A stretch of 64,000 nt of DNA from Macrostomum lignano (lineage: Eukaryota). Below the pieces are notes generated by a model that was not told the origin of the DNA, did not search any database, and worked only from the letters and a program-made list of their open reading frames with translations. Each line of letters begins with the position of its first letter. Positions within the stretch are counted from its first letter, which is position 1. This document shows, one piece after another, positions 1 through 60,320 of the stretch. Both the position numbers and the translations under genes were made by a program. Where the stretch lies: the NCBI GenBank assembly GCA_002269645.1, contig NIVC01002079.1, positions 124,001-188,000 of the forward strand. The letters are read 5' to 3'.

Positions 1-712
1 AGGCTATTGTGAGTTTTTTTTCGCATTTTGCTTTGTCCGCCTGCCCGTGAGCTGTGGAATCGCTAATCCCAGCTCATCAGGCGGAGATTATGCCGTAGCT
101 TTATCCCGTCAGTCTTTGTTGAGCTTTGTAGAAGCAGTTTAGTTACTCGCACCGCAGCAGCACCTCCTCCTTTTGGAGTCTCATTTTCAGCGTGCTTTTT
201 TCTGTCACATTCTGTACTGAGTCTGCAGCACAGACTCCGCCGCTCTCCATCTGAGCTCTGCGCTTCTCCAGCATGCCGGCCGGCGCTCCCTGATGAAGTG
301 TCCCGGCCATGCATGCTGCTCCGCCTTTCCCCGGTTGATTTTTGCACAATGTTCTTCCTGTCTACTTTTTGTCAGTAGTTTATCCCGCTCGTGCAGCAGA
401 CTCAAGCGCTAAACTAAGATTTGCATTGCGGTTCCACAGTTTCCAGCTTGACAGCAGCAGCTCCGGTCTCTTCCGCATGAATTTGTTGTCACCTGTGCGA
501 GCTGCCGTCTCCCTACCTGCACCGGTGCCCCTCATCAGTACTTCTCTAAGCCAGACCGTATCGCTACTTTCTGTCTCTCCCCCCCCCACACTCCTTCCAA
601 ACAGTCTGAAATACATCGAATATGCAGACTTGCAGTTGGCCGAAATTCTGCCTGTTCCTTTTCAACCGCACTTTGCTGTCCGCGTTCGATGTGCTCTCGT
701 TTTGCTTTTCAG
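1..712 (+). repeat. Inverted near-identical copy of 12235-12946 (non-coding, probably the 3' UTR region of a 4E-T paralog lying upstream of the window)
   Basis: Base 1 pairs with 12946 as reverse complement and homology runs to about 712 with only a handful of substitutions. The six-frame ORFs at 63-797 and 12177-12884 are mirror images. Confidence 0.9.
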
Positions 713-1161
713 AATCCTGATGAGGATCTGCTTTCCAATTGGCTGCAGACTGTTGACGCACCGTCCTGGCTGGGATGTGGCATTTTGCTCCAAGTGACTG
801 CAGTTTTCGAGCTTTCTGTCGTCACGCCGATAATTCTTAGTATGATTGTCCTCTTTCAAAATCCTGAGGAGTTTCCCTCGCAGCAGTGCATGCTGTATTG
901 CTATTTATCGATATATTAGTAGCCGCGCCTTCCAAGTTCAACGAGACCGAAGCACCGAAGAGCCTCTGAGACTACTCGTATTCGTAAAGCACAAAGCAAA
1001 TTATTGGTTTTTAATCAAAGAGGAACAGCCTGTTTTGACATGGGGGACGGTAAAATAGACCGCTTAAGTAGTAAAAGGCAAATCAAGGTCAGAGCCAACA
1101 TTTGTAGAGAGCCGATGCATTTAGACCAAAGCGGTCATCGTCAGGACAATGTATTTTTTTA

Positions 1162-7414: not shown

Positions 7415-7689
7415 GTAAGCAGTATCCTGATTGGCTACTCAAATGAAATTTAAAATTGTGCCATAACCGAAACTGTTATGATAAAGCCAAGTCATGTGTT
7501 GAAACCTACGAAAACTCGTACACCCAGAGTCTGGGTAATCAAGCCAATATATATTATCGAAACACCAATGTACATACCCGGTAGAGTGCCGGCAGTGTAC
7601 ACTGCATCAAGTACACGAAACTACGGAGTCGATAGAAAGCGATACTATAAGTACACACAAGCCACACACAACAGAAACTATCCCAGCGA

Positions 7690-8460
7690 GAGATCACACC
7701 ATAGAGATCACACCATAGAGATCACACCATAGAGATCACACCATAGAGATCACACCATAGAGATCACATCATAGAGATCACACCATAGAGATCACACCAT
7801 AGAGATCACACCATAGAGATCACACTGATTACACCATAGAGATCACACTGATTACACCATAGAGATCACACCATAGAGATCACACCATAGAGACCACACC
7901 ACAGAGATCACACCATTGAGATCACACCATAGAGATCGCACCATAGAGATTACACCATAGCGATCACATCATGGACATCACACCATATGGATCACACCGT
8001 AGAGATCACACTGATTACACCATATGGATCACACCGTAGAGATCACACCATATGGATCACACCGTAGAGATCACACTGATTACACCATATGGATCACACC
8101 GTAGAGATCACACTGATTACACCATAGAGATCACACCATAGAGATCACACCATAGAGATCACACTGATTACACCATAGAGATCACACCATAGAGATCACA
8201 CCATAGAGATCACACCATAGAGATCACACCATAGAGATCACACCATAGAGATCACACCACAGAGATCACACCATAGAGATCACACCATAGAGATCACACC
8301 ACAGAGATCACACCATAGAGATCACACCACAGAGATCACACCATAGAGATCACACCACAGAGATCACACCATAGAGATCACACCACAGAGATCACACCAT
8401 AGAGATCACACCACAGAGATCACACCATAGAGATCACACCACAGAGATCACACCATAGAG
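7690..8460. repeat. 14-bp minisatellite (CACACCATAGAGAT)n filling the VWA5A intron
   Basis: Directly visible tandem array with variant units. Confidence 0.95.
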
Positions 8461-8519
8461 AAAACGCCGTGAAGATTCCATCGCAGAACTCCAACCAGTA
8501 TCCCATGATCGCATTGCAG

Positions 8520-9448: not shown

Positions 9449-9546
9449 GGGTTGTAGCCTAGTGGTTAGAGCCTTTGACTCACGACTGAAAGGTCGGGGG
9501 TTCGATTCGCGACCCACTCGGAACAATTTGTGTCCTTGAGCAAGAC
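9449..9546 (+). mobile_element. 3'-truncated tRNA-derived SINE (same family as 60052)
   Basis: A box TAGCCTAGTGG and B box GGTTCGATTC, then aacaatttgtgtccttgagcaagac shared with 60122-60146. Confidence 0.75.
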
Positions 9547-10125
9547 TTTTTTCTTTTCTTTAAATGAGTCTGTGGTTGTGACTGCGAGTTCTCTCAGCAT
9601 GGACAGCTCACACTCGTACAAGGGGTATTGTCAAAGAAATTCGATCACTTCTGGTGCATTTTGTCTGTGACCAGAGTTCGGGGTGAGTCCGAACTTCTCG
9701 TTGCCAAAGTGCCAGAAGTAGGTGGCATTTTTTCAGCTAGTCTGCAAAAGCACTATGTAGAGCTTTAAGTAGACACTTTGGCTTTTCGACACTCGCTTGC
9801 AGCTGAAAAAAGATTTACTGAACCGGAACTAAGGGCGCACATCCAAGAAAATGTTTGAGCTACTGCTCCCAGGATCCCCTGTTTGACTTTCGTTTTTAGT
9901 TTGCTTCGCTCACAGCTGCTGGTGAGGTTTTTTTCATTCGTGACTCTGATGCAAAGCGAACAGAAGTCCTCCGCTAATCCCTACGCAAACGCTGATCAAT
10001 TTTCTGAATCTCAAAGTAGTCAGGTCCCAATCAGTCTCTCGATTCGCCATAGTAATGCTTGTTTTGTTTAATTGCATAAATAGAAGCTCAGGCACGGAGG
10101 ATGAAAGCAGATGGGGGACCTACAG

Positions 10126-12234: not shown

Positions 12235-12946
12235 TCTGAAAGCAAAACGAGAGCACACCGAACGCGGACAGCAAAGTGCGGTTGAAAAGGAACAGGCAGA
12301 ATTTCGGCCAACTGCAAGTCTGCATATTCGATGTATTTCAGACTGTTTGGAAGGAGTGTGGGGGGGGGAGAGACAGAAATTAGCGATACGGTCTGGCTTA
12401 GAGAAGTACTGATGAGGGGCGCCGGTGCAGGTAGGGAGACGGCAGCTCGCACAGGTGACAACAAATTCATGCGGAACAGACCGGAGCTGCTGCTGTCAAG
12501 CTGGAAACTGTGGAACCGCAATGCAAATCTTAGTTTAGCGCTTGAGTCTGCTGCACGAGCGGGATAAACTACTGACAAAAAGTAGACAGGAAGAACATTG
12601 TGCAAAAATCAACCGGGGAAAGGAGGAGCAGCATGCATGGCCGGGACACTTCATCAGGGAGCGCCGGCCGGCATGCTGGAGAAGCGCAGAGCTCAGATGG
12701 AGAGCGGCGGAGTCTGTGCTGCAGACTCAGTACAGAAAGTGACAGAAAAAAGCACGCTGAAAATGAGACTCCAAAAGGAGGAGGTGCTGCTGCGGTGCGA
12801 GTAACTAAACTGCTTCTACAAAGCTCAACAAAGACTGACGGGATAAAGCTACGGCATAATCTCCGCCTGATGAGCTGGGATTAGCGATTCCACAGCTCAC
12901 GGGCAGGCGGACAAAGCAAAATGCGAAAAAAAACTCACAATAGCCT
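12235..12946 (-). repeat. Second copy of the inverted duplication; lies 3' of the 4E-T stop codon
   Basis: Reverse complement of 1-712. Confidence 0.9.
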
Positions 12947-13459
12947 TAGCGAGAAAGCCTAGCAAAAATAGAGTTGGAACCAAAGCTACTCACAATGCAA
13001 AGTCGCAAGCAAAGCCAGTCGAACAGGCAAAGAAAATCGCTGCGCTAAACGGGCGGAGTCGCCGGCGCGGGCGGAGGGCCAAAATTTACAGGAAAATCAA
13101 ATAGAAAATTAATGATCGAAGCGAAATGAAATTCCAGCGACATCATCGAGTTGCTGGGATAATCTGTCACCAGGAGTGCATTGTAAAACAGGAGAGAACT
13201 AAAATATTGCTCAATGACGAAGAAAATTAAACGCGAGTTCGAATTCCAAAAGCCAATTGGCGCGGACTGCAACTGCAAAAACACCGCAGACAAGAGGGAG
13301 ACAGCAAGACGGCAGCAGGCGAGAAGGCGGGGACAATTCAAGGTCAGTCGGAGAGGAAACTCGGGGTGCTGAAGAGTCGCTAGCAACAATTGTTGGGGCA
13401 TTAACGAGTTCGGCAGTGTCTGTGGGCCGAGTGAGCTCAGCTGAGCAGTGCTCAAGCGG

Positions 13460-13936: not shown

Positions 13937-13974
13937 CTGCGAGATGCGGCAGGGAGGCTGGGTTTCAGTACAGT

Positions 13975-14835
13975 GGCTGTGGGTTTTAATACAGGGGCAG
14001 TGGGTTTGAGTACAGGGGCTGTGGGTTTGAGTACAGGGGCTGTGGGTTTGAGTACAGGGACTGGGGTTTTGAGTACAGGGACTGTGGGTTAGAGTACAGG
14101 GGCTGTGAGTTTGAGTACAGGGGCTGTGGGTTTGAGTACAGGGGCTGTGGGTTTGAGTACAGTGGCTGTGGGTTTGAGTACAGTGGCTGTGGGTTTGAGT
14201 ACAGTGGCTGTGGGTTTGAGTACAGTGGCTGTGGGTTAAAGTACAGGGACTGGAAGTTTGAGTACAGGGACTGGGGTTTTGAGTACAGGAACTGTGGGTT
14301 TGAGTACAGTGGCTGTGGGTTTGAGTACAGGGACTGTGGGTTTGAGTACAGGGACTGTGGGTTTGAGTACAGTGGCTGTGGGTTTGAGTACAGGGACTGT
14401 GGGTTTGAGTACAGGGGCTGTGAGTTTGAGTACAGGGGCTGTGGGTTTGAGTACAGGGACTGTGGGTTTGAGTACAGGGGCTGTGAGTTTGAGTACAGGG
14501 GCTGTGAGTTTGAGTACAAGGACTGTGGGTTTGAGTACAGGGGCTGTGGGTTTGAGTACAGGAACTGTGGGTTTGAGTACAGGGACTGTGGGTTTGAGTA
14601 CAGGGGATGTGGGTTTGAGTACAGGGACTGTGGGTTTGAGTACAGGGGCTGTCGGTTTGAGTACAGGGGCTGTGGGTTTGAGTACAGGGGATGTGGGTTT
14701 GAGTACAGGGGCTGTGGGTTTGAGTACAGGGGCTGTGGGTTTGAGTACAGGGGCTGTGGGTTTGAGTACAGGGGCTGTGGGTTTGAGTACAGGGGCTGTG
14801 AGTTTGAGTACAGTAAAGTAACTGTGGGTTTGAGT
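13975..14835. repeat. 21-bp minisatellite (GGGTTTGAGTACAGGGGCTGT)n, intronic
   Basis: Visible tandem array; it generates the spurious CTQTHSP/GLSTGAV ORFs. Confidence 0.95.
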
Positions 14836-15444: not shown

Positions 15445-17165
15445 AACACTGCAAGGCATGGTGCAGACACACTGCAAGGCATGGTGCAGACACTGCAAGG
15501 CATGGTGCAGACACTGCAAGGCATGGTGCAGACACTGCAAGGCATGGTGCAGACACTGCAAGGCATGGTGCAGACACTGCAAGGCATGGTGCAGACACTG
15601 CAAAGCATGGTGCAGACACTGCAAGGCATGGTGCAGACACTGCAAGGCATGGTGCAGACACTGCAAGGCATGGTGCAGACACTGCAAGGCATGGTGCAGA
15701 CACTGCAAGGCATGGTGCAGACACTGCAAGGCATGGTGCAGACACTGCAAGGCATGGTGCAGACACACTCATGCCACAGCAGACACATACGTCACAGCAG
15801 ACACACTCATGTCACAGCGGACACACTTATGTCACAGCAGACACATTTATGTCACAGCAGACACACTCATGTCTCTGCAGACACACTCATGCCACAGTAG
15901 ACATACTCATGTCTCTGCAGACACACTCATGCCACAGCAGACACACTCATGCCACAGCAGACACACTCATGTCACAGTAGACATACTCATGTCACAGCAG
16001 ACACATATGTCACAGCAGACACACTCATGTCTCAGCAGACACACTCATGTCACAGCAGACACATATGTCACAGCAGACACACTCATGTCACAGCAGACAC
16101 ATTTATGTCACAGCAGACACACTCATGTCTCTGCAGACACACTCATGCCACAGCAGACACACTCATGCCACAGCAGACACATATGTCACAGCAGACACAC
16201 TCATGTCACAGCAGACACATTTATGTCACAGCAGACACACTCATGTCACAGCAGACACACTCATGCCACAGCAGACACACTCATGTCACAGCAGACACAC
16301 TCATGTCACAGCAGACACATATGTCACAGCAGACACACTCATGTCTCAGCAGACACACTCATGTCACAGCAGACACATATGTCACAGCAGACACACTCAT
16401 GTCACAGCAGACACATTTATGTCACAGCAGACACACTCATGTCACAGTAGACATACTCATGTCACAGCAGACACACTCATGTAACAGCAGACACATTTAT
16501 GTCACAGCAGACACACTCATGTCACAGCAGACACATTTATGTCACAGCAGACACACTCATGTCACAGCAGACACACTCATGTCACAGCAGACACACTCAT
16601 GTCTCAGCAGACACACTCATGTCACAGCAGACACATATGTCACAGCAGACACACTCATGTCACAGCAGACACATTTATGTCACAGCAGACACACTCATGT
16701 CTCTGCAGACACACTCATGCCACAGCAGACACACTCATGCCACAGCAGACACATATGTCACAGCAGACACACTCATGTCACAGCAGACACATTTATGTCA
16801 CAGCAGACACACTCATGTCACAGCAGACACACTCATGTCACAGCAGACACACTCATGTCACAGCAGACACATTTATGTCACAGCAGACACACTCATGTCA
16901 CAGCAGACACACTCATGTCACAGCAGACACACTCATGCCACAGCAGACACACTCATGTCACAGCAGACACATATGTCACAGCAGACACACTCATGTCTCA
17001 GCAGACACACTCATGTCACAGCAGACACATATGTCACAGCAGACACACTCATGTCACAGCAGACACACTCATGTCACAGCAGACACACTCATGTCACAGC
17101 AGACACACTCATGTCACAGCAGACACACTCATGTCACAGCAGACACACTCATGTCACAGCAAACA
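15445..17165. repeat. Compound minisatellite: 21-bp (GCAGACACTGCAAGGCATGGT)n to about 15765, then 18/20-bp (CACAGCAGACACACTCATGT)n, intronic
   Basis: Visible arrays sharing the GCAGACAC core. Confidence 0.95.
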
Positions 17166-17242
17166 CTAAGAAATGGTGCAAAACACTGAAGTGACAACAA
17201 AAATGACAACATCAGAGAACCAAAATGCAAGAGTGCTCAAAC

Positions 17243-20430: not shown

Positions 20431-21880
20431 TCTGAACGGTTATATGATGGTTTAGATGTTGGACGGACAGAGAATATGTTTACAAAAATGAAAATACTAG
20501 TTAAGTTAATTGCTCTCGCGCGTTTGTCTAGAAATAGGATTGAACTTAAATATTTTAAGAGTTTCTATGAGATTCTGAGTATCGAAGAGTTCTCCATATA
20601 CTTAGCCAGTAAACGCTACAGCGCAATGTCTCCAAGATTCTTCAGAGGTGTTGAAGGTATGGATGAAGTGCTAAATTATCAAGAGATTAAATTAGAAACA
20701 ATAAGATGCATTTTGAAAACCCATGTCGAACATTTTAAATGGAGAATACTTCCAGCACCCGAATATCGTCATCGGTAGTCCATCAGTAGTGTGGACTATA
20801 CTAATAAGCAGTCGAAACATGGTTTTGTTTAATTCTATTGATTACAAAAAGAAACTGTTCCCGTGCTATGAACTAGTAAAAATTGAATGAGTAGACAAAT
20901 GCAACACAAAAATCAATTACCTTGATGGCTTTAAGACTTGAACTCCCTGGAAGAAATAAAAGGCCCATAAGTTCTAACTGATGCACGAAGCTAAGAATTA
21001 ATTTTAAAAGGATATTTTATATGTACAGTGAAAATTAAGTGCAAAGAAAATTTTTCTGCTTTATTATAAAGTAGTTCTGATCATAAAACACTAGTTTTTT
21101 TACTAATAATTGGGAATAAAAATAGTTTTAACAGAAAGCTGTGTTTCACTTGTTAAACACCGTAAAATAATAGACTAAAGAATCCCAGAAGCAGTTTATG
21201 CTGTTTAAATGTGATTAAATTTGTAAAAACGAATGCTGCATGCAAACTCTGCTAAAGTACTTTTTAGTTGTTTTATTTGTTGTTATGTCTCTAGAGTTAC
21301 CTAAATGATGGAAAAAGCTTATAAGCGCGAAGTCTATTTCTGTTTTTTATTATCAACGTTTTTTATATATTTGTTTCGAAAATTGTAATTCGTAGAAATA
21401 GGCGGAATTCAATGAAGAAAAGCGCAATGTTAGCATAGCTTGATAGCTTGCCTTGCCCCTGAGTCAATTTAATATTATTTTATTTATTTACATTTGCAGG
21501 CTACTATTTAATTATTTGTAGGTCTTATTTTATGCATAAATTAACGTAAATCATAAGCCTGGTAGTCTATTAGTTTAATATGCATCGTGATCGTGTATGA
21601 CAATAATATTAGGCTACTTCTGTCACATGTGATGATCATGTGTAGATGTGCTAATTCAATGCATTTATTTCTTTCTTATTAGGCCTAACAATAACATTGA
21701 CAAAGCAAAATATGATATATATATATAAAACTTAAAAGTTGAAACATCTAGGCCTAAGGCTGAGTCTTTAGGCTAATCCTTTTTATTTTATCAATTAAGA
21801 CCTATGGGCTATGACATTAACTGTCATTCAAAATTACAAAACTGAATTCATAATATTGTTATGTATATAAGTAGAAAGTG

Positions 21881-22535
21881 CTTATCCCCATAGTCCCTTG
21901 CCAATAATTCCAATTTTATCCACACAGATCCATGCCAATAATTTCCAGCTTATCCCCACAATAGCTTATTGAAATATAGCTGCTACCATTCAAGTCTATA
22001 TAGGCCATGTCAATAATTCCAAGTTTATCCACACAGATCCATGTCAATAATTTTTAGCTTATCCCCATGGCTAAGATTGTGCAGTTGTTTGTGTTTAGTT
22101 TTGTGTACTGATTTTAAAGTAATATTGTCATTATTATTAATATTATCATTACTATTAGTATTATATTTTGAATTTTAAATTTTGCAAGTCTTGTTTGCCT
22201 CAATCTTTGGGTCGTTTGATCGTTCTAAGCAAAGCTGGCAGCTAAGCAAATATTTTAAATTAACCCTTTTAATGATGAAAAAGTTTTAACAAAGTAGTCA
22301 ATATTATTTAGAATTAATTACATGTAGTTTGTAGTTTATTTTAAAGTTTTGTAAAACAGTGAAAACAAAAAGATGGTTTTTGAACAGATTCATTTTAAGG
22401 TTCTTTATTCTAATAAGCAGCTCTACTATGGGGATAAGCTAGAAATTATCGATATGGATCTGTATGGATAAAATTGGAATTATTGACATGGCCTATAGAC
22501 TTGAATAGTGGCAGTTATTTCAATAAGCTGCCATG
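21881..22535. repeat. Decayed inverted-repeat element (arms about 21963-22068 and 22426-22530, extra partial copy at 21881-21960)
   Basis: Arms align as reverse complements over about 100 nt with 9 substitutions and two 2-bp indels. Confidence 0.75.
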
Positions 22536-24401
22536 GAGATTAGCTGGCAATTTAAATTAACTTTTAATAATAAAAAAAGCAATAGTTAGTATACCATGCT
22601 ATGCTATAATCATTGTACAATGATTCTCTAGGGACACTAAAACTAGATAGCTAGAAACAATGATAAAGGAGGTCCCTATCTTGTTTCTAACATTCTAGGG
22701 TCTCTGTATTGATACTAATAGAAAAGTATTAGATTAGACTATTGACTGACAATTTGTCTTTGACTTTGGGTCATATTAGTATATCTAAGTCTTTTTGCCT
22801 CCAACAATGTCAACTAGTTTCCTTGATGTTTTCTTTACAATTTTTTAGCATTTTTTTATACTAGTCTATCTTAACCAATCTTTGCTCATGTGATCGCAAA
22901 TATAGTACTTATTGAGTATATAGATTCCAAAGACTTAGATAGGCCCTATTGCAATCTACAACCCCAAAGATTCTAGGTCCCAGGCAGTCTAGTACTACAT
23001 GCATAGCATGCATCAAGGAGTTAGAAAAGTTTTTTGGCAATCTTTGCACAGCAATAATATGGCATATAAAAAGTAAAAAAATGCATAGCACCATAGTTAA
23101 AGCTATATAATAGCTGAACCACAGAAATTTTTAGTCCTTTTATAAAAATATATATGATACTTGTCACTTTTGAAGTGAGTATTATATATTATGGTAAGAA
23201 AAATATAGAAAAAGAAAAAAAGCAAAAAAATATATTTAGGTTGCAACAAAAGAAGCATTTCTAAAAGCATTGTATATTTGCAGTCTCAAAAAATAAAAAA
23301 ATTGTTACAATGCAAAAAGGTCCTTTATTGTTGCAACACAAAAAAGTCCTTTATTCCTTTGTTGTCACAATGCCCCAACTTGCAACCCTCATTTTAGTCC
23401 ATCAATACACTTAGTGGATTTGATCCCACCCTCCCATATACAATGTGCAAAGCAAAAAGTTATTGTATGCACAGTGCATAGGGTTACAATTGTTATACAT
23501 AGTTAATTAAGATAGAAACTCATTGGGAAAGGGTGTTGCAAGCTGAGAAAAAATTTTGCTAGTTTTAGGTTGCACTTGAAATCAGGTAGTGAATAATTAT
23601 AAGAAAATTGCAATTTTTAAGCCTCATGACTTTTAGCATAGGGTTTGTGCTAATTAGACTCTAAATTAGAGTTGGCTAAGTAGATAGCAACAAGACTTAA
23701 CATGTATTTCTGATAATAATTTAGTTTATAGGTTAAAGTTGATAAACAAAAAGTTTTATTTAGATTTCTTTTCTATTCTTAAGACTTTTATGGCATTTAT
23801 AAGTCGTATGCTTTGTTACCCTTTTATATTTTGATAAATTTAGTAAATTTCATTAGACTAATCTAAATATTTGCTAGGCATATAGATATTTATAATATAG
23901 TTAGCATTTAATATGCATATAATATACTATGCATATAAGACTTTTGGTTTATGTATTGCATAGGGATAGTTAGATTATATTTGCAATATATGAATCAATA
24001 GACCAAATTGATAGGCAGGTCTAGTGGATAAAATTGGAAAGAATCATATAATTTCAATATTAGTTTTTTATTATATATTTGCAATTGATAGATCATATTA
24101 TTATCATTGTCATCAAAACTTACTGAACTAAGCAAGTTTTAAAAATTCCTATATAGTACTATGGCATTAGTAGTAATATATGAGTATATAGTTACATGCC
24201 AAAAAATCTAGGTCTGATCTTTAAATCTTCCTAGATAAAATTAAACAAGTCTAATTATAATTATATACAAATTCAATCAAAGCTATATTGATTAGCTATA
24301 TTGCTTATTTAAATATATATAACAATTTTTCTTAAATTTCAAGTCAACATATATATCTTATAATGTAATATATTTTTTCTTTTGTATAGAGTCTATATTT
24401 T

Positions 24402-24595
24402 TAACAATTTATGTCTTTGAGCAAGACATTTAATTATACATTGCTTTAGTTTATTTAGCTATAAAATAGATATTAATATTAGCTAGGATAATTGAAGATA
24501 CATGTGGTAACCCCCTAGTCCTTGGACTAAATAGCCATATATAGGTTTTAGATACACTATAATAATTGCAGCAATGCTATCAGTTGCATATCTAG
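24402..24595 (+). mobile_element. Hypermutated copy of the SINE body found intact at 60121-60310
   Basis: Colinear alignment, e.g. cagttcacccagctgtaaaatgggtgccagcattagctggggcaattgaggg versus tagtttatttagctataaaatagatattaatattagctaggataattgaaga; shared anchors tgagcaagaca and agtccttggact. Confidence 0.85.
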
Positions 24596-25177
24596 TCATT
24601 AGGATAGTTATAATCAATTAATTTTTCCATTCTTTGTTTTTTCTTCTTTTATTCATTTTTATATTTCTGTCCTCTGCAACCACTTAATTTTTTATGCTCT
24701 TCTAAGTTAATTGCAAACAATAAAAATAGATTGTTTGTCTATAATGACTTTTCTCTCATGACAATCTAATATTGAGTATAAAAGTTCAAGGATTAGAATC
24801 CTAAATGAATAGTAGCAATTAAAATTAATGCATTTAAAAAGATTGTACATTGCAACTTTTGAGTATTCAAAGTCTATTAGATAAAAGTAGACTATAGGCA
24901 CACAATGGACACATTGATTTTAACCTTTTTTCATTAGGGTTAATCCCTACTTATAGCAATAATTTACATTGCTATAAGCAATAACTTTGCAAATGGGAAA
25001 ATTTCTGCTTAGTTGCAAGGATGTTGATCAAATGATATGCTTTAATATATAACTATAATCTTGACCTTTTTAATAAAAAATGTAATGTTTAATAAATTTT
25101 GAAAAATCAGAACTACTACTAGTATAGGAAAATGAAACATTGTGAATCAAGTGAGAGCATGTAGTGTTAGCATACAT

Positions 25178-25333
25178 GCGCAACCTTGGGAATCACTCAG
25201 TCATTTCTATTGGCAACACACACATGTAAGTTGCTATTGGCTGAGAGCAGTCACGTGACTACTATTCCATCCAATAGCAACTTACATGTGTGTGTTGCCA
25301 ATAGAAATGGCCAGGTGAATCCCTAGGTTGCGC
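25178..25333. repeat. Small foldback element: perfect 39-bp inner arms, 30-nt loop, imperfect outer arms
   Basis: 25202-25240 is the exact reverse complement of 25271-25309; outer arms gcgcaaccttggga / tccctaggttgcgc; the loop holds the palindrome AGTCACGTGACT. Confidence 0.8.
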
Positions 25334-25900
25334 CCAAGCATGAGTGTTAGAGTTTAAGCATTTGATAATTTAAAATTTATACAAAAAAGACAATCATTAC
25401 ATTTATGAATAATATAAGCAAAACAAATCTGAATTGAGTGTGGCACCATTATAGTTAAAATTAAATATTGCCCTAATTTGAGTTTCTTTTAAGCCCACCT
25501 TTAGCCATTAATAATACTATAGTTAAAGTATGGAATTCTACAGTTTTAAATCTAATTTCTAACCTATATATAAAAGGTAGGTTTCATATAAAGATTCTCT
25601 TTTATCTATGCTATGCCAAGCTTGGCAGTGGATAAAAACTATCAGAGCTAGTTGAATAAATAAATGTTGCTTTTTACGCTCATACTACTGAACAGAGAGT
25701 AGTTTTGTTATAAATATAGTTAAGTGAACCATTCAGCGTACTTTGTATCTGTGCCAGTAACCAGTGGCTTGATGAAATTGCCCCCGCTCCCAGTTGGTAC
25801 TTGCTAGCTAATTGTTTCGTCTATGGGCAGAAGTGCAAGTTATCTCTAAAGCCAACTATGCAATGCTTATTTATCTATCTGAGCCCGTGTCAATCTTCAG

Positions 25901-26204: not shown

Positions 26205-27415
26205 CCTAATCCCATGGGGTGGGGGCTGAAAGTGATCTGTCTTTTTTAATCCCATGGGGTGGCTGTCCTAATCCCATGAGTGGCTGTCCTAATCCCATGG
26301 GGTGGCTGTCCTAATCCCATGGGGTGGGGGCTGAAAGTGATCTGTCTTTTTTAATCCCATGGGGTGGCTGTCCTAATCCCATGAGTGGCTGTCCTAATCC
26401 CATGGGGTGGCTGTCCTAATCCCATGGGGTGGGGGCTGAAAGTGATCTGTCTTTTTTAATCCCATGGGGTGGCTGTCCTAATCCCATGGGGTAGGGGCTG
26501 AAAGTGATCTGTCTTTTTTAATCCCATGGGGTGGCTGTCCTAATCCAATCGGATGGCTGCCTTAATCCAATCGGATGGCTGTCTTAATCCCATAGGGTGG
26601 CTGTCTTAATCCAATCGGATGGCTGTCTTAATCCCATAGGGTGGCTGTCTTAATCCCATAGGGTGGCTGTCTTAATCCCATAGGGTGGCTGTCTTAATCC
26701 CATCGGGTGGCTGTCTTAATCCCATGGGGTGGCTGTCTTAATCCCATGGGGTGGCTGTCTTAATCCCATGGGGGTGGCTGTCTTAATCCCATAGGGTGGC
26801 TGTCTTAATCCCATGGGGGTGGCTGTCTTAATCCCATCGGGTGGCTGTCTTAATCCCATGGGGTGGCTGTCTTAATCCCATGGGGTGGCTGTCTTAATCC
26901 CATGGGGGTGGCTGTCTTAATCCCATAGGGTGGCTGTCTTAATCCCATAGGGTGGCTGTCTTAATCCCATAGGGTGGCTGTCTTAATCCCATAGGGTGGC
27001 TGTCTTAATCCCATCGGGTGGCTGTCTTAATCCCATGGGGTGGCTTTCTTAATCCCATGGGGTGGCTGTCTTAATCCCATGGGGGTGGCTGTCTTAATCC
27101 CATGGGGGTGGCTGTCTTAATCCCATAGGGTGGCTGTCTTAATCCCATGGGGGTGGCTGTCTTAATCCCATCGGGTGGCTGTCTTAATCCCATGGGGTGG
27201 CTGTCTTAATCCCATGGGGTGGCTGTCTTAATCCCATGGGGGTGGCTGTCTTAATCCCATAGGGTGGCTGTCTTAATCCCATAGGGTGGCTGTCTTAATC
27301 CCATCGGGTGGCTGTCTTAATCCCATGAGGGTGGCTGTCTTAATCCCACGGGGGTGGCTGTTTTGATCCCATAGGATGGCTGTCTTAATCCCACGGGGTG
27401 GCTGTTTTGATCCCA
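26205..27415. repeat. About 22-bp minisatellite (GGGTGGCTGTCTTAATCCCAT(G/A))n with a higher-order block at the 5' end, intronic
   Basis: Visible tandem array starting right after the donor site. Confidence 0.95.
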
Positions 27416-27693
27416 TGGAGAGCAGCTTGTGTGTGCTCAGCAGTCAGCGGAATGGGCAGAATCGCTTCAGCGCTGGTCGTGAGGAATGTCGCCAAAGGCG
27501 TTGCGCCAGGGTGCGCGCAGCCTTCCCCCGAATATTTAATATTTGACTCCCACAATTCCAAGTGTCGCAAGTTCAAATCCCTGTATTACCTGAACTCGTA
27601 CTGTCTATAATTTAGATTGCAATCCACCATCAAGTCTGCCCGGAGAATCGGACCCAGCTTTCGATAGCAAAGTTGTTAGTACCAAGCACGCAG

Positions 27694-32094: not shown

Positions 32095-33400
32095 TCTAGA
32101 AGCCAAGGAGAATCCCAGTAGGAACTCGAGGGAATCCTAGGAAAAACCCGATGAGAATCCCAGTAGAAACTCGAGGGAATCCTAGGAAAAACCCGAGGAG
32201 AATCCCAGTAGGAACTCGAGGGAATCCTAGGAAAAACCCGAGGAGAATCCCAGTAGGAACTCGAGGGAATCCTAGGAAAAACCCGAGGAGAATCCCAGTA
32301 GGAACTCGAGGGAATCCTAGGAAAAACCCGAGGAGAATCCCAGTAGGAACTCAACGGAATCCTAGGAAAAACCCGAGGAGAATCCCAGTTGAAAACCGAG
32401 GAAAATCCCAGTGAGAACTCGAAGGAATCCTATGTGAAACCCGAGGAGAATCCCAGAGGGAATCCTAAGAGAATCCCAGAAGGAATCCTAAGAGAATCCC
32501 AGGGGCAACCCGTGGAGAATCCCAGGGGCAACCCGTGGAGAATCCCAGGGGCAACCCGTGGAGAATCCCAGGGGCAACCCGTGGAGAATCCCAGGGGCAA
32601 CCCGTGGAGAATCCCAGGGGCAACCCGTGGAGAATCCCAGGGGCAACCCGTGGAGAATCCCAGGGGCAACCCGTGGAGAATCCCAGGGGCAACCCGTGGA
32701 GAATCCCAGGGGCAACCCGTGGAGAATCCCAGGGGCAACCCGTGGAGAATCCCAGGGGCAACCCGTGGAGAATCCCAGGGGCAACCCGTGGAGAATCCCA
32801 GGGGCAACCCGTGGAGAATCCCAGGGGCAACCCGTGGAGAATCCCAGGGGCAACCCGTGGAGAATCCCAGGGGCAACCCGTGGAGAATCCCAGGGGCAAC
32901 CCGTGGAGAATCCCAGGGGCAACCCGTGGAGAATCCAGGGGCAACCCGTGGAGAATCCCAGGGGCAACCCGTGGAGAATCCCAGGGGCAACCCGTGGAGA
33001 ATCCCAGGGGCAACCCGTGGAGAATCCCAGGGGCAACCCGTGGAGAATCCCAGGGGCAACCCGTGGAGAATCCCAGGGGCAACCCGTGGAGAATCCCAGG
33101 GGCAACCCGTGGAGAATCCCAGGGGCAACCCGTGGAGAATCCCAGGGGCAACCCGTGGTGAATCCCAGGGGCAACCCGTGGAGAATCCCAGGGGCAACCC
33201 GTGGAGAATCCCAGGGGCAACCCGTGGAGAATCCCAGGGGCAACCCGTGGAGAATCCCAGGGGCAACCCGTTGAGAATCCCAGGGGCAACCCGTGGAGAA
33301 TCCCAGGGGCAACCCGTGGAGAATCCCAGGGGCAACCCGTGGAGAATCCCAGGTGGAACCCAGGAAGAAACCCAAGGCGAATCCCTGTAGAACCCAAATA
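32095..33400. repeat. Compound minisatellite: 45-bp unit (about 32100-32400) followed by 23-bp (GAGAATCCCAGGGGCAACCCGTG)n
   Basis: Visible arrays upstream of CBR copy A. Confidence 0.95.
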
Positions 33401-33677
33401 GAATCCCAGTGAGAACTCAAGGAGAATCCTAGTTGTAACTCTACGGAATACCAGGGGAAATTCGAGGAGAATCCCAAGGAAAGCCAGAGGAGATTTCATG
33501 GGAACCCGGGGAAAATCCCAGTGGAATCCAAAGTGCATTCAAAGGAAACCGGAGAAAATGCAAGGAAATCCGCCGATAGTCTTAAGCGCAATTCTAGGAA
33601 ATCCGAGAAAAATCTCAGGGGTATCCGGGGGTGACCTATAATATGATCCCTGAGTTCCTGTCCCCTATTGCTGCGCC

Positions 33678-34181
33678 ATGTCCTCAGCACTGAAGGTGGC
33701 CGTAGTGACCGGCTCCAACAAGGGCATCGGGTTCGCCATTGTGGAACACCTCTGCAAGCAGCTGGGCTCCAGCTGGGCCGTCTATGTGACCTCGCGCGAT
33801 GAAGCTCGCGGCGCCGATGCTCTGAGCCAGTTGAAGCAGCGCGGAGTCGAGCCGCGATTTCACCAGCTGGACATCGACAGTCAGGAGAGCGTGGACCGCC
33901 TCGCCGCCTACCTTAAAGGCACCTACGGAGGCCTCGACATTCTCGTTAACAATGCTGGCATTGCCTATAAGGGCGACTCGACCGCGCCGTTCGCCGAGCA
34001 AGCAGAGGTCACCATAGCAACCAACTTTTGGAGCACTCTGCGTATCTGTGATGCGCTGTTCCCTCTGCTGAGGCCGCACGCTCGGGTTGTGCACCTGTGC
34101 AGCAGCGTTAGCGATATGGCACTCAACAAGGCTTCTCCGGAGTTGCAGAAGAAGCTCACGCAGCCCATGAGTCTGGATGAG
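33678..34181 (+). CDS. CBR1: Carbonyl reductase (CBR1/3-like SDR) copy A, exon 1
   Basis: TGSNKGIG (TGxxxGxG), FHQLDIDS, LVNNAGIAYK, TNFWST; donor GAG|gtaagt. Confidence 0.9.
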
Positions 34182-34234
34182 GTAAGTGCTGTCTTTGAAG
34201 TGATGTGCAACGCTTTACTTTACCTTTGGACTTT

Positions 34235-34620
34235 AAAATAGACATAACCAATCTTATAGGCTGCAGACAGTGTTTACCCTAGACGTAACCAATCCTGTAG
34301 GCTGCGGACAGTGTTTACCATAGACATAACCAAAGCTGTAGGCTCCGGACAGTGTTTACCATAGACAACCAATCTTATAGGCTGCGGACAGTGTTTACCA
34401 TAGACATAACCAATCTTATAGGCTGCAGGCAGTGTTTACCATAGACGTAACCAATCTTATAGGCTGCAGACAGTGTTTACCCTAGACGTAACCAAAGCTG
34501 TAGGCTGCGGACAGTGTTTACCATAGACATAACCAAAGCTGTAGGCTCCGTACAGTGTTTACCATAGACATAACCAATCTTATAGGCTGCGGACAGTGTT
34601 TACCATAGACATAACCAAAT
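34235..34620. repeat. 41-bp intronic minisatellite of CBR copy A
   Basis: (CCATAGACATAACCAATCTTATAGGCTGCGGACAGTGTTTA)n with variants. Confidence 0.9.
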
Positions 34621-35975: not shown

Positions 35976-36172
35976 AGAGTTTTGGGAAATCTTAAACAAC
36001 ATTAGAGTGTTTTAGAAACAAAGGAAGAAATTCCTGGGAACCCCAAGGGGAATCTGAAGGTAATCCTTCCGAATCGCAGGGGAATTTTTGGGAAGACTTC
36101 GTGGCACTCCTTCAGAGCCAATACCCTAACCCCAAGTGAGTCCCAACAGTTCCTGTCCCCTATTGCAGCGCC

Positions 36173-36676
36173 ATGGCCTCAGCACTGAAGGTGGCCGTAG
36201 TGACCGGCTCCAACAAGGGCATCGGGTTCGCCATTGTGGAGCAGCTCTGCAAGCAGCTGGGCTCCAGCTGGGCCGTCTATGTGACCTCGCGCGACAAAGC
36301 TCGCGGCGCCGATGCTCTGCGCCAGTTGAAGGAGCGCGGAGCCGAGCCGCGATTTCACCAGCTGGACATCGACAGTCAGGAGAGCGTGGACCGCCTCGCC
36401 GCCTACCTTAAAGGCACCTACGGAGGCCTCGATATTCTCGTTAACAATGCTGCCATTGCCTACAAGGGCGACTCGACCGCGCCGTTCGCCGAGCAAGCAG
36501 AGGTCACCATAGCAACCAACTTTTGGAGCACTCTGCGTATCTGTGATGCGCTGTTCCCTCTGCTGAGGCCGCACGCTCGGGTTGTGCACCTGTGCAGCAG
36601 CGTTAGCGATATGGCACTCAACAAGGCTTCTCCGGAGTTGCAGAAGAAGCTCACGCAGCCCATGAGTCTGGATGAG
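36173..36676 (+). CDS. CBR1: Carbonyl reductase copy B, exon 1
   Basis: Near-identical to copy A; NNAA instead of NNAG. Confidence 0.9.
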
Positions 36677-36729
36677 GTAAGTGCTGTCTTTGAAGTGATG
36701 TGCAACGCTTTACTTTACCTTTGGACTTT

Positions 36730-37320
36730 AAAATAGACATAACCAATCTTATAGGCTGCAGACAGTGTTTACCCTAGACGTAACCAATCCTGTAGGCTGC
36801 AGACAGTGCTTAACATAGACATAACCAATCTTATAGGCTGCGAACAGTGTTATCATAGACAACCAATCTTATAGGCTGCGAACAGTGTTTACCATAGACA
36901 TAACCAATCTTATAGGCTGCAGGCAGTGTTTACCCTAGACGTAACCAATCCTGTAGGCTGCGGACAGTGCTTAACATAGACATAACCAATCTTATAGGCT
37001 GCGGACAGTGTTTACCATAGACATAACCAATCTTATAGGCTGCAGGCAGTGTTTACCCTAGACGTAACCAATCCTGTAGGCTGCGGACAGTGCTTAACAT
37101 AGACATAACCAATCTTATAGGCTGCGAACAGTGTTTACCATAGACATAACCAATCTTATAGGCTGCAGGCAGTGTTTACCCTAGACGTAACCAATCCTGT
37201 AGGCTGCGGACAGTGCTTAACATAGACATAACCAATCTTATAGGCTGCGGACAGTGTTTACCATAGACATAACCAAAGCTGTAGGCTCCGGACAGTGTTT
37301 ACCATAGACATAACCAAACC
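36730..37320. repeat. 41-bp intronic minisatellite of CBR copy B (longer than in copy A)
   Basis: Same unit as 34235-34620; intron is 666 bp versus 465 bp. Confidence 0.9.
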
Positions 37321-39644: not shown

Positions 39645-40164
39645 TGCTGCTATGTAGGAGCGGTAGCTCTGGTCGGTATGCCTGGCTCTGGTACTGGCCG
39701 AGGGACAGATGGTTTGAATAGAGAAGAGCGTCTTAAAATCCGCTCCTTTGGCCTCTTGGCCGTGCCATTTTTCTCAAATTAAAGAGGGCAAGGAGTTTAA
39801 GGTTGCTACGCGTATTGTGTGCTGCGCTGCACAGCTAGAACCCTTCGCCATCTCTCTCTCTCTCTCTCTTGCTCCTCACCCTTCCACCTGTCTCTCTGCT
39901 TATAGCACATTCTACTGCAGTGCTCTTTACTCCATCGCGATTCCCCGTGGCCATGGTTTCACCCTCAATAAAGTGGCCGTTGTGCGATGCGGTCTTCCGC
40001 TCTTACCCCCCCCCTTCCAGTGCCCCTCTCTGGCACAGGCCAGTTTACTCTTAAGCTTTTTATACGTCGTATAGCTCGTACATATGGCTTAGCGCTTGAC
40101 TTTTCTTAGTTGTCATTGGCTTACACTTGACTTCCAATATCAATTGCATATATAATACAACCAG

Positions 40165-41405
40165 CTTGGACTCCCCGTGAAACCATGCTTGGATTCCCCG
40201 TGAAACCATGCTTGAATTCCTCGTGAAACCATGCTTGAATTCCCCGTGAAACCATGCTTGAATTCCCCGTAAAACCATGCTTGAATTCCCCGTGAAACCA
40301 TGCTTAAATTCCCCGTGAAACCATGCTTGAATTCCCCGTGAAACCATGCTTGAATTCCCCGTGAAACCATGCTTGAATTCCCCGTGAAACCATGCTTGAA
40401 TTCCTCGTGAAACCATGCTTGAATTCCCCGTGAAACCATGCTTGAATTCCCCGTGAAACCATGCTTAAATTCCCCGTGAAACCATGCTTGAATTCCCCGT
40501 GAAACCATGCTTAAATTCCCCGTGAAACCATGCTTGAATTCCCCGTGAAACCATGCTTAAATTCCCCGTGAAACCATGCTTGAATTCCCCGTGAAACCAT
40601 GCTTGAATTCCCCGTGAAACCATGCTTGAATTCCCCGTAAAACCATGCTTGAATTCCCCGTGAAACCATGCTTGAATTCCCCGTAAAACCATGCTTGAAT
40701 TCCCCGTGAAACCATGCTTAAATTCCCCGTGAAACCATGCTTGAATTCCCCGTGAAACCATGCTTGAATTCCCCGTGAAACCATGCTTGAATTCCCCGTG
40801 AAACCATGCTTGAATTCCCCGTAAAACCATGCTTGAATTCCCCGTGAAACCATGCTTGAATTCCCCGTAAAACCATGCTTGAATTCCCCGTGAAACCATG
40901 CTTAAATTCCCCGTGAAACCATGCTTGAATTCCCCGTGTAGCCGGCCTGAATTTCTTGTGAAATCAACTTGAATTTCCCATGAAACCATGCTTAAATTCC
41001 CCGTGAAACCATGACTGAATTCCCCATAAAACTGACTGAATTCCCCATAAAACTATAACTTAATTCCCCATAAAACCATGACTGAATTCCCCGTGAAGCC
41101 GGCTCGAATTTCTTGTGAAATCAACTTTAATTCCCCATGAAACCAGCTTGAATTCCCCATAAAACCATAACTGAATTCCCCGTGAAACGATGACTGAATT
41201 CCCCGTGAGACCATGACTGAATTCCCCGTAAAACCATGACTGAATTCCCCGTAAAACCATGACTGAATTCTCCGTGAGACCATAACTGAATTCCCCGTAA
41301 AACCATGACTGAATTCCCCGTGAGACCATGACTGAATTCCCCGTAAAACCATGACTGAATTCCCCGTGAAACCATGACTGAATTCCCCGTAAAACCATAA
41401 CTGAA
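40165..41405. repeat. 23-bp minisatellite (TTGAATTCCCCGTGAAACCATGC)n grading into an ...CATGAC variant
   Basis: Visible array between the calmodulin-like and AF10 genes. Confidence 0.95.
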
Positions 41406-41549
41406 TTCCAGTTGCAGGCTGTCGCCACGCCGCCGCAACCTGCTGCTTTGCTGAGAGCCGCCACAGCAGCCTTTCCATAGCAGCAATCAATCAATCGGCG
41501 GCAGGCGGAGCTGTCAATCAATCAAAGCCATAATATAGGGGGTTAAAAT

Positions 41550-42087: not shown

Positions 42088-42380
<293 letters not shown>

Positions 42381-42558
42381 GGCCCTGACTTTCTCATTGC
42401 CAGACAGCGCACACTCTCAGCGCCTTAAAAGTTAGCCGGCACTACAACGCACGACAATCCCTACAGGCAATTTTTTCTTTTATAAATCGCAAAATCAATC
42501 AATTCAGTCAAGTGCAGACTCGAACCTGGGACGTTGTTCTTCTAAAATTTGATTGCAG

Positions 42559-43559: not shown

Positions 43560-44200
43560 CAGTAGTCCACAACATCTATAGATGTCCCTGATCAGCAGTC
43601 CACAGCATCTATAGATGTCCCTGATCAGCAGTCCACAGCATCTATAGATGTCCCTGATCAGTAGTCCACAACATCTATAGATGTCCCTGATCAGCAGTCC
43701 ACAGCATCTATAGATGTCCCTGATCAGCAGTCCACAGCATCTATAGATGTCCCTGATCAGCAGTCCACAACATCTATAGATGTCCCTGATCAGCAGTCCA
43801 CAGCATCTATAGATGTCCCTGATCAGCAGTCCACAGCATCTATAGATGTCCCTGATCGGCAGTGCACGGCTTCTATAGATGTCCCTGATCGGCAGTCCAC
43901 AGCATCTATAGATGTCCCTGATCAGCAGTCCACAGCATCTATAGATGTCCCTGATCAGCAGTCCACAGCATCTATAGATGTCCCTGATCAGCAGTCCACA
44001 GCATCTATAGATGTCCCTGATCAGCAGTCCACAGCATCTATAGATGTCCCTGATCAGCAGTCCACAGCATCTATAGATGTCCCTGATCAGCAGTCCACAG
44101 CATCTATAGATGTCCCTGATCAGCAGTCCACAGCATCTATAGATGTCCCTGATCAGCAGTCCACAGCATCTATAGATGTCCCTGATCAGCAGTCCACAGC
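43560..44200. repeat. 33-bp minisatellite (CAGCAGTCCACAGCATCTATAGATGTCCCTGAT)n in AF10 intron 2
   Basis: Visible array. Confidence 0.95.
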
Positions 44201-48599: not shown

Positions 48600-49190
48600 T
48601 ATTGGGATTCCCTAAGATCGATTGGGATTCCCTCAGATCGATTGGGATTCCCTCAGATCAATTAGGATTCCCTCAGATCGATTGGGATTCCCTCAGATCG
48701 ATTGGGATTCCCTCAGATCGATTGGGATTCCCTCAGATCGATTGGGATTCCCTCAGATCGATTGGGATTCCCTCAGATCAATTAGGATTCCCTCAGATCG
48801 ATTGGGATTCCCTCAGATCAATTAGGATTCCCTCAGATCAATTAGGATTCCCTCAGATCAATTGGGATTCCCTCAGATCGATTGGGATTCCCTCAGATCG
48901 TTTGGGATTTCCTAATTTATCGGGATTCGCCAAGGTCTATTGGGGTTCCCTCAGATTGATTGGGATTCCCTCAGATCGACTGGGATTCCCTCAGATCGAT
49001 TGGGATTCCCTCAGATCGATTGGGATTCCCTCAGATCAATTGGGATTCCCTCAGATCGATTGGGATTCCCTCAGATCAATTGGGATTCCCTCACATCAAT
49101 TGGGATTCCGTCACATCAATTGGGGTTCCCTCAGATTTATTGGGATTCTCTGATCTATCGGGATTCGCCAAGGTCTATTGAGATTCTGAT
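48600..49190. repeat. 20-bp minisatellite (ATTGGGATTCCCTCAGATCG)n
   Basis: Visible array. Confidence 0.95.
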
Positions 49191-52505: not shown

Positions 52506-52924
52506 GGGGTCAATGAGATATGCAGGGCTACAAGACAAGATATTGGTCAAGCAATAATGACAGCGATAAGCAGAAAGACAGTGCAGACTGCAGACACTCG
52601 GGTCTTTCAAGTTTGCTTCTTGAAAAAAACACGCAGCAGCTTTGCCGGGGGGGGGGGCAGCGCCGGCGGATTTTTTTCAGCTGCTCAGCGCCTGAATTTG
52701 GGATCTTGGAAGAAAAGTGGGAGATCGATATTGGAATTGAGAGGGAGAGAACGGGAGGGGGCAGTTTTGGCTACCACAGCGTTTCGCCGCCCTCAAGTAA
52801 GAGTGCGAGTATTGCAGGAATCGAACCCAGTTGGAGGATAGGTATTATGCCTCCGGCTGAGAGCTGCGAGGTCACTTCAGGTCAATAGGGATATATCTCT
52901 GCAGGATAAACGAGCACTCAGAGC

Positions 52925-54593: not shown

Positions 54594-55476
<883 letters not shown>

Positions 55477-59470: not shown

Positions 59471-60051
59471 CGTACGTATCCGCGCGCTTGTGTGCCTGCT
59501 CAGGGGAGTCGGCGGAATGGGCACTAATGCCTCTCGCCGGTTGTGTGCCTATGTCGCTTAAAGTGCGCCAGGGTGCACACAACCCCCCTGCCTCTAATAA
59601 AAAAATAAAAGGTCCATCAGCGCGGTGCTACACTGGGCCCTTGAAGGAAGCAGGAGGACTGCCTCCGGAGCCTGCGGACTAGCCGCATACCCAAAACGGT
59701 AGAGACAGAAGCCAAGGCCACGGATGGGTTGCCGCCGCCGGAGCCCAGTCAGTCCAGCAGCCCTAGAGCTGCCTTGAGCACATGCGGGGCGTGAACCCCT
59801 GGGTCTGCTTGTGAGTCAGCTTGGAGAGAGTTCTCCTGCCATTCCTGCACCAGAATAGAGGGGGTGCAGGTGTGTAGGATCGCAGACCTTAGCTCGTACC
59901 AGTAAGCCTGGTCTGCCTCATGCTACACAGGCGTGCTGAACTCACCATTGCATGTCGATGCGGCCCCTGGTTTGATTGCGTGTGCGGCCAGGTGGGTTGC
60001 CGTGCGGGTCAGCCTCAGGGAGTGTACCTGCCTGATGATGCCTGGTTTGTA

Positions 60052-60320
60052 GGTAGCCTAGTGGTCAGAGCGTCGGCTTCACGACTCAAAGGTCGGGAGT
60101 TCGATTCTCGACCGAACTCGTAACAATTTGTGTCCTTGAGCAAGACACTTAACTCTGCGTTCAGTTCACCCAGCTGTAAAATGGGTGCCAGCATTAGCTG
60201 GGGCAATTGAGGGTGTGTGAGGACCCCCAGTCCTTGGACTGAACAGCCGTGCGCAGCCTTCAGATGCGCCGCGCAATAGCTGCGGCTGAGCTGTCGGTTG
60301 CACATCTGCCTATTAGGGCC
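60052..60320 (+). mobile_element. Intact tRNA-derived SINE with a CORE-like central domain
   Basis: A box TAGCCTAGTGG and B box AGTTCGATTC, then tgtgtccttgagcaagacacttaactct...cagctgtaaaatggg resembling the CORE-SINE domain. Copies at 9449 and 24402. Confidence 0.8.

Follow-up and report, generated by a model that had tools for sequence, protein, structure and literature searches.

A GC-to-AT hypermutated SINE copy in a CpG- and CAG-depleted AT-rich island of the Macrostomum lignano genome

A copy of a tRNA-derived SINE family of about 290 nt, located at 24330..24625 on the forward strand of the window (the whole stretch of 64,000 nucleotides of Macrostomum lignano DNA that was analysed), was confirmed to be hypermutated by C>T and G>A changes. 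The footprint is regional, covering the non-repeat DNA of the AT-rich island in which the copy lies and not limited to repeats, and the mutation process continued after the homeologous copies of this region had diverged. The best explanation, which we consider moderately probable, would be germline methylation of CG and CAG restricted to the island, with subsequent deamination of 5-methylcytosine (5mC).

The SINE copy and its family

The consensus of the family was obtained from 30 genomic copies, the youngest ones. It carries TAGCCTAGTGG and GGTTCGATTC, and A- and B-box motifs are present in its GC-rich, tRNA-like head. Copies terminate in an (ATT)n-like tail, and the features of a tRNA-derived SINE, high copy number included, were found. 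The Rfam tRNA model remained below the gathering score for the SINE, and the Rfam scan of the window gave no matches.

The body of the window copy (24403-24618) showed 58 substitutions against the consensus over 215 aligned nt (24 C>T, 27 G>A, one T>C and six transversions), with GC>AT changes making up 51 of the 58 and about half of its cytosines lost through C-to-T changes. Its head (24330-24402) is degenerate and contains an internal deletion. A nearly intact SINE of the same family (60046..60320, forward strand), whose GC-rich surroundings have a normal CpG content, was used as internal control and differed from the consensus by 12 substitutions in 266 nt (four GC>AT, two AT>GC, six transversions). 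Transversions were equal in both copies, six in each, against 51 and four GC>AT changes, respectively. When the window copy was compared with the 60-kb copy alone, 48 GC>AT, two AT>GC and seven transversions were counted, confirming the colinear excess of C>T and G>A described in a previous sequence-only reading of this DNA and fitting its partial count. The 60-kb SINE is also found in both homeologs and is therefore older than the duplication too. A third copy (9449..9561, forward strand), 3'-truncated and corresponding to consensus positions 2-114 in the alignment, is not hypermutated (12 substitutions in 113 nt, four C>T and eight transversions); as had been stated, it sides with the 60-kb copy at both overlapping sites where the other two differ.

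The GC>AT polarity proposed earlier also held. The consensus of the 30 copies, which would have to be AT-rich if the 60-kb copy were the derived one, came out GC-rich at its tRNA-like head, and independent hypermutated copies were struck at different sites. The opposite arrangement, in which an AT-rich subfamily is ancestral and the GC-rich copies arose through A-to-I editing or gene conversion, or in which an assembly or sequencing error simulates the pattern, is a formal possibility and an extremely improbable one. An AT-rich subfamily with reversed polarity was discarded on the basis of the GC-rich consensus, of the 18 independent copies, whose mutated sites differ and range in frequency, depending on context, from 0 to 100%, and of the near absence of TG/CA cross-states at CA/TG sites, contrary to a CG ancestor. 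Against an artefact, homeologous contigs that were assembled independently contain both the island and the mutated copy, and nine hypermutated copies have homeolog partners carrying the same changes.

The family was sampled in a transition-blind manner, through a genome search with a purine/pyrimidine pattern of 35 nt, which needs 35 nt free of transversions. This pattern gave 3,206 genome matches versus none for the reversed control, and the family thus comprises at least 3,206 copies. Most of the 100 35-mers listed among the 3,206 matches were at or close to the consensus, with per-site transitions of 2.9% for GC>AT and 3.9% for AT>GC. The first 60 transition-blind copies constituted the background; pooled, they were balanced (333 GC>AT : 234 AT>GC : 298 transversions), one of them having 25 GC>AT changes, one 15 and the remainder 14 or fewer. 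The window copy differed from these 60 copies in Fisher tests of GC>AT versus all other substitutions (p = 6e-14) and of GC>AT versus transversions (51:6 against 333:298, p = 2e-8).

Two additional features of typical SINEs were recorded. Their AT>GC transitions are per site at least as frequent as GC>AT, and the A>G variants AAGGCAC and GACGCTT recur in about 10% of copies (60 transition-blind copies and listed 35-mers). Either these variants are CpG-creating markers of subfamilies, or they point to GC-biased fixation in DNA beyond the islands.

A query with the hypermutated copy retrieved about 30 further GC>AT-rich copies, representing 18 independent loci, several of them as homeolog pairs. 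Retrieval by similarity to the window copy gives this set a selection bias, which was checked with the head region and with the sites unmutated in the window copy, and not removed. Judged by transversions, the age of the hypermutated copies is about double that of typical ones. About 300 kb of the genome was sampled for the analysis. All 18 loci are located in AT-rich stretches of about 0.6 to more than 3 kb with mostly low flanking CpG observed/expected ratio (o/e). The earlier proposal of a locus-dependent process that leaves other copies of the family untouched was upheld: the hypermutated copies are a small minority confined to AT-rich stretches, the family majority is intact, and more than 95% of copies are unaffected according to the 60-copy and listed 35-mer samples. 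Ordinary ageing was ruled out, in agreement with the previous reading, since the transversions of the window copy match those of its intact neighbour and typical old copies lack the GC>AT bias: those with 10-13 transversions carry just 7-9 GC>AT changes, and the spectrum is thus not common to all old copies.

Sequence context and strand pattern of the changes

A total of 704 events were recorded in the 18 independent hypermutated copies, 331 of them C>T and 373 G>A. Changes of the two types are interspersed, without strand clusters (strand runs test, mean z +0.59). Per opportunity, the mutated fraction was 0.59 for CG, 0.38 for CA, 0.16 for CC and 0.12 for CT. Considering two 3' bases, the values were 0.59 for CGN, 0.56 for CAG, 0.28 for CAH, 0.10 for CTG and 0.11 for CCG, and CY contexts ranged from 0.08 to 0.20. 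The effect of the 5' base was small (TC 0.37, AC 0.32, CC 0.30, GC 0.22). CAG exceeded CAH in a site-level test (p = 0.0014), CG and CAG showed no difference, and CAG and CTG were asymmetric (0.56 versus 0.10), the cytosine of the complementary strand being spared. The values for CAG and CAH bear out the genuine non-CpG component that had been claimed. The same hierarchy of contexts is present in the tRNA head, a part that the search query did not include, and at the sites unmutated in the window copy.

The consensus CpG sites of the hypermutated copies are now TG in 82 cases, CA in 70, TA in 44 and CG in only six (97% lost), and typical copies have kept CG at 620 of about 733 consensus CpG (85%). 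In the less-mutated copies the fractions were CG 0.52, CA 0.19, CC 0.08 and CT 0.045; CG leads in these copies and was therefore lost first. Typical copies show C>T at 3-6% in all contexts, with a CpG excess that is at most weak (5.6% versus 3-4%) and with CAG above CAH (6.6% versus 2.9%, p = 3e-5).

The contexts of the window copy, per opportunity, were CAG 15/16, CG 10/14, CAH 10/25 and CY 16/54, and none of the 15 CpG dinucleotides of the consensus remains. The counts given in the sequence-only reading (CpA 18, CpG 4) were raw and unnormalised; the per-opportunity value for CG and the loss of all 15 CpG indicate that CpG is heavily targeted and that the CpA signal is mostly CAG. The description of the process as two-strand and CpA-biased stands in its first part, with both strands affected, and fails in the second, because CpA is not its hallmark when most of the signal is CAG and CpG is equally targeted. 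Two further candidates were rejected. An artefact due to ancestral CpG at consensus CA/TG sites was ruled out by the cross-states (TG/CA 9 versus TA 266), and a plant-like symmetric CHG methylation was rejected on account of CTG and CCG, neither of which is elevated.

A cytidine deaminase acting independently of methylation, AID/APOBEC-like or of another family, on DNA exposed in the islands is rather unlikely. The C>T specificity with few transversions and the regional effect are in favour of such an enzyme. The specificity is set here by the 3' bases (0.12 to 0.59), with a minor role of the 5' base (0.22 to 0.37), and known AID/APOBEC enzymes have their specificity set by the 5' base (TC, CC or WRC). 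Neither are there strand-coordinated runs, and the domain APOBEC_N (PF08210), the family covered by the deaminase search, gave no match in the genome. APOBEC-type editing was accordingly ruled out by context, strand pattern and absence of PF08210, and the earlier statement that the changes are not strand-coordinated editing of this type is endorsed by hits interspersed on both strands and by the weak 5' effect.

The AT-rich island and its homeologs

The entire AT-rich zone extends, by composition, over 20500..25750. Its core (21500..25500) is CpG- and CAG-depleted, with GC 0.22-0.33 and CpG o/e 0-0.31. The left outer 1 kb of the zone (20500-21500) is equally AT-rich (GC 0.28-0.35) with normal CpG o/e (0.84-0.94), and the CpG-depleted footprint is therefore narrower and sharper-edged than the compositional island. 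The majority of the window has a CpG o/e near 1. After removal of the SINE and of a MITE-like element, the island DNA, which had no relatives among the sequences compared in this analysis, showed CG o/e 0.26, CAG o/e 0.85, TAG o/e 1.42 and CAG/TAG 0.24, versus CG o/e 0.78-0.83, CAG o/e 1.35-1.40 and CAG/TAG 0.62-0.87 for AT-rich DNA of comparable GC elsewhere. The AT-rich flanks of other hypermutated copies are similar to the island. Some young intact SINEs are placed in AT-rich flanks with normal CpG o/e, and AT-richness alone is therefore not the cause.

The MITE-like element (21876..22552, by repeat comparison), inside the island, is about 680 bp long, has long terminal inverted repeats, with both ends matching in inverted orientation, and has dozens of copies, with identities of 79-86%. 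Its terminal repeat was sampled in 100 transition-blind copies (35-nt matches only), in which CG survives in 11-14% at three inferred ancestral CpGs, which are CA/TG in 70-87% and TA in 2-17%. This low survival indicates that methylation-type decay of transposons is widespread in this genome. A genome search with a purine/pyrimidine pattern of its central part gave the self-match only.

M. lignano is a hidden polyploid, and two homeologous contigs of the window (C647 and C975) were used as internal outgroups. The AT-rich zone has the same composition in the window and in both contigs. The hypermutated SINE is common to the window and C647; C975 is without about 870 bp (window 23888-24764) spanning it, a gap that exceeds the SINE and thus looks like a deletion and not like an empty insertion site. 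In nine homeolog pairs of hypermutated copies, the shared changes were 312 GC>AT : 21 AT>GC : 77 transversions and the private ones 24 GC>AT : 8 AT>GC : 16 transversions; most damage is therefore older than the duplication.

Post-duplication C>T changes were polarised by parsimony among the three homeologs. At CAG they affected 9 of 24 sites in the island core versus 3 of 343 in the flanks (p = 8e-10); the corresponding values were 2/12 versus 24/942 at CG, 21/223 versus 8/573 at CAH and 23/304 versus 28/1824 at CY. C/T differences in the AT-rich bins of eight other homeolog pairs were found at 31/68 CG, 14/147 CAG, 37/1122 CAH and 53/1871 CY, the CG value contrasting with about 3% at other C sites, and the rates around intact copies, also between homeolog pairs, were much lower. 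These context-resolved counts show continuing CAG and CG loss, and a single pre-duplication burst was dropped as a candidate. After the duplication all substitution classes are 2-5 times above the flanks in the window island, so that relaxed constraint or alignment noise adds to the raw divergence.

That the data require no special process, old copies lying in AT-rich DNA that is weakly constrained or poor in recombination and accumulating ordinary AT-biased mutation, with GC-biased gene conversion elsewhere, seems unlikely. The double age of the hypermutated copies, the increase of every substitution class in the island, and the CAG and CG excess that typical copies show in a faint version would agree with it. 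Nevertheless, with transversions matched, the window copy has about seven times the GC>AT transitions of typical copies; typical copies with 10-13 transversions carry only 7-9 of them; AT-rich DNA of equal GC retains its CpG and CAG; young intact copies are found in AT-rich flanks; and a trinucleotide-specific footprint is not predicted by gene conversion bias.

Other features were observed in the alignments and in the window. Identity between the window and C647 is 91-97% up to about 25,800 and then about 100% up to about 30,700, that with C975 staying at 96-99%; the abrupt switch at about 25,800 suggests a recent homeolog gene conversion, or a haplotype or assembly switch. Window positions 1-713 (about 710 bp) match, inverted, a stretch of C647 that also aligns from window position 12242 (12242-12950), and this segment of the window start is 99.3% identical to C975; from these alignments, 1-713 and 12242-12950 are read as a local inverted duplication. 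Minisatellite arrays with periods of 14-44 bp, 0.5-2.5 kb each, are interleaved with GC-rich exons at unusual density (7689-8461, 13959-14813, 15446-17166, 26246-27418, 32107-33361, 40159-41409, 43560-44200, 48601-49166, 49976-52506, 56125-57313 and 61166-62246), together with the simple repeats (TATC)n at 54596-55476 and (GTTA)n at 42088-42381. The open frames 33654-34241 and 36140-36736 are nearly identical and about 2.5 kb apart, and the same 41-bp minisatellite comes after each of them; on visual inspection they resemble short-chain dehydrogenase/reductase exons, and the pair seems to have arisen by a recent tandem duplication of a gene.

Methyltransferase genes and comparison with known systems

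The C5-methyltransferase domain PF00145 is present in the genome in three gene groups, with three loci each. Methyltransferase and replication-foci (RFD) domains occur together on contigs C3325, C112 and C866 (DNMT1), and methyltransferase and ADD domains on C305, C2545 and C3236 (DNMT3). The search for DNMT-like methyltransferases recommended with the sequence-only reading was thus positive. The three loci of DNMT1 and of DNMT3 are apparently homeologous copies, and the third group is probably the DNMT2 reported in PMC3710501. Retention of DNMT1 and DNMT3 in M. lignano has been described, with low 5mC levels and unknown distribution (PMC11292947, PMC9246332).

The headline of the previous reading, a RIP-like hypermutation, was not sustained: the RIP indices fail, CpG is co-targeted, non-repeat DNA is affected and the family is mostly intact. 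With thresholds of TpA/ApT >= 0.89, (CpA+TpG)/(ApC+GpT) <= 1.03 and composite > 0, the indices were 1.00, 1.36 and -0.36 in the island and 1.06, 1.27 and -0.21 in the SINE copy; the product index alone passes, and the substrate and composite indices fail in both. As in fungal RIP (RID/DIM-2), C:G to T:A changes affect two strands, transposon copies are inactivated, AT-rich islands are formed, a CA component is present and a DNMT-family enzyme is suspected. Unlike fungal RIP, there is no sign here of a homology trigger, more than 95% of the sampled family being intact, and CpG is a top target. Mutation is not confined to the duplicated segment either, with post-duplication CAG>TAG in non-repeat island DNA, and is slow and ongoing, RIP proceeding in premeiotic bursts.

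A true RIP analogue, that is, a homology-sensing system that converts C to T enzymatically in duplicated DNA by means of a DNMT-like protein of RID/DIM-2 type, is consequently very unlikely in our assessment. It could draw on the C>T changes that repeats show on both strands, with a strong contribution of CA, on the presence in the island of no fewer than two repeat families (those of the SINE and of the MITE-like element), on the presence of C5-methyltransferase genes, and on a loss of CAG as fast as that of CG, which could hint at enzyme-driven deamination. However, a family of more than 3,200 copies is almost wholly untouched, which disfavours a homology trigger; just one or two of the 60 transition-blind copies reach even a moderate level of change and the 3,206 matches are mostly intact, and this intact majority largely refutes the analogue. 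The length of the element, only about 290 nt, the same footprint in non-repeat island DNA, CpG among the top targets, the substrate and composite indices of the island, and the slow continuation after duplication without bursts also oppose it, as does the fact that two of the three PF00145 groups adjoin RFD or ADD, like DNMT1 and DNMT3. As for the locus-dependent repeat-mutating process of the previous reading, the branch of methylation plus deamination is favoured by context and regional data, and the branch of a RIP analogue loses ground on the indices and the intact majority.

Hypermutable CpG, TG/CA products, changes on both strands, confinement to a compartment with a CpG o/e near 1 in the remaining genome, and the presence of DNMT1 and DNMT3 are shared with the decay of 5mC, as known from vertebrate CpG decay and from the methylated compartments of mosaic invertebrate genomes. 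Differently from that decay, CAG loss matches CG loss here and other CA is raised too, so that GC collapses from 55% to 28%, beyond CpG loss alone. The compartment is also different from that of mosaic invertebrates, being a kilobase-scale AT-rich intergenic or repeat island and not gene bodies. Invertebrate 5mC is generally concentrated in gene bodies, and is found on transposons in some species only (PMC11292947).

Non-CG methylation dependent on DNMT3 is known in mammals, with mCAG through DNMT3B in embryonic stem cells and mCAC through DNMT3A in neurons (PMC7736785, PMC5595995). The footprint studied here resembles it in the order CG > CA > CT/CC, the CAG preference and the CAG/CTG asymmetry, and is a mutational footprint only. 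In mammals, methylation occupancy at non-CG sites is far below that of CG. In contrast to this low-occupancy mark, the effect in the window copy, which would have taken place in an invertebrate germline, erased 15 of 16 CAG sites. To our knowledge, no footprint in evolving sequences has been ascribed to mammalian DNMT3 non-CG methylation, nor has non-CG methylation been established in the invertebrate germline.

Hypermutation in basidiomycetes is reportedly CpG-centred, in TCG context, with methylation-mediated deamination as candidate cause, and is not known to include a CAG component. PMC3318451 describes it as RIP-like C-to-T hypermutation of transposons, targeted to CpG, and the present case is similar in that copies of transposable elements are C-to-T hypermutated outside classical ascomycete RIP, the lineage being fungal there and a flatworm here. 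Vertebrate APOBEC editing of retroelements also leaves individual copies with clusters of G>A or C>T, on one strand, with 5' context and during reverse transcription (PMC4866542); in M. lignano, however, both strands and the 3' context are involved, the flanks are affected too, and the changes continued after insertion.

In the mechanism that we favour, the SINE copy would act only as a tracer, having inserted into a kilobase-scale chromatin island or having given rise to it, and in this island cytosines on both strands would change to thymine far faster than elsewhere, preferentially at CG and CAG, then at other CA, with CT and CC little affected. A heritable germline cytosine-5 methylation restricted to the island may be responsible: a DNMT3-type de novo enzyme with a CAG-preferring non-CG activity would methylate CAG as well as CG, maintenance of the CG marks would fall to DNMT1, and deamination of 5-methylcytosine would be the mutagenic step leading to C>T. 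Over time, nearly all CG and CAG would be removed, TG/CA and then TA and TAG would rise, and GC would fall from about 55% to about 28%. The weak CpG hypermutability of typical copies and the CpG o/e of about 1 in most of the window fit a mostly unmethylated genome with methylated islands.

Several points run against the methylation reading, among them the selection bias of the hypermutated set and the rise of every substitution class in the window island. CAG loss equals CG loss, unlike mammalian occupancies, and an unusually heavy CAG methylation or an extra enzymatic step is therefore needed; moreover, 5mC has been reported as low in adult M. lignano. The parity of CAG and CG, above mammalian expectation, leaves room for an enzyme-assisted step. 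A more far-reaching version, to which we assign a low probability, would be an animal germline DNMT-dependent C-to-T mutagenesis targeted to CG and CAG inside kilobase islands, possibly enzyme-catalysed as proposed for RID/DIM-2 and not a passive decay, which would permanently inactivate transposons and would be a functional analogue of RIP steered by chromatin or small RNAs and not by homology. Since the defining features of RIP failed where tested, the phenomenon is grouped with methylation-driven decay, and not with RIP.

If methylation of the island is indeed the cause, M. lignano is predicted to methylate discrete intergenic or repeat islands, and not gene bodies, with a methylation that covers CAG at high occupancy and whose strength and persistence have sufficed to create AT-rich islands and to wipe out copies of transposons. 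In practice, repeat annotation and transposon dating will mis-age the copies inside such islands.
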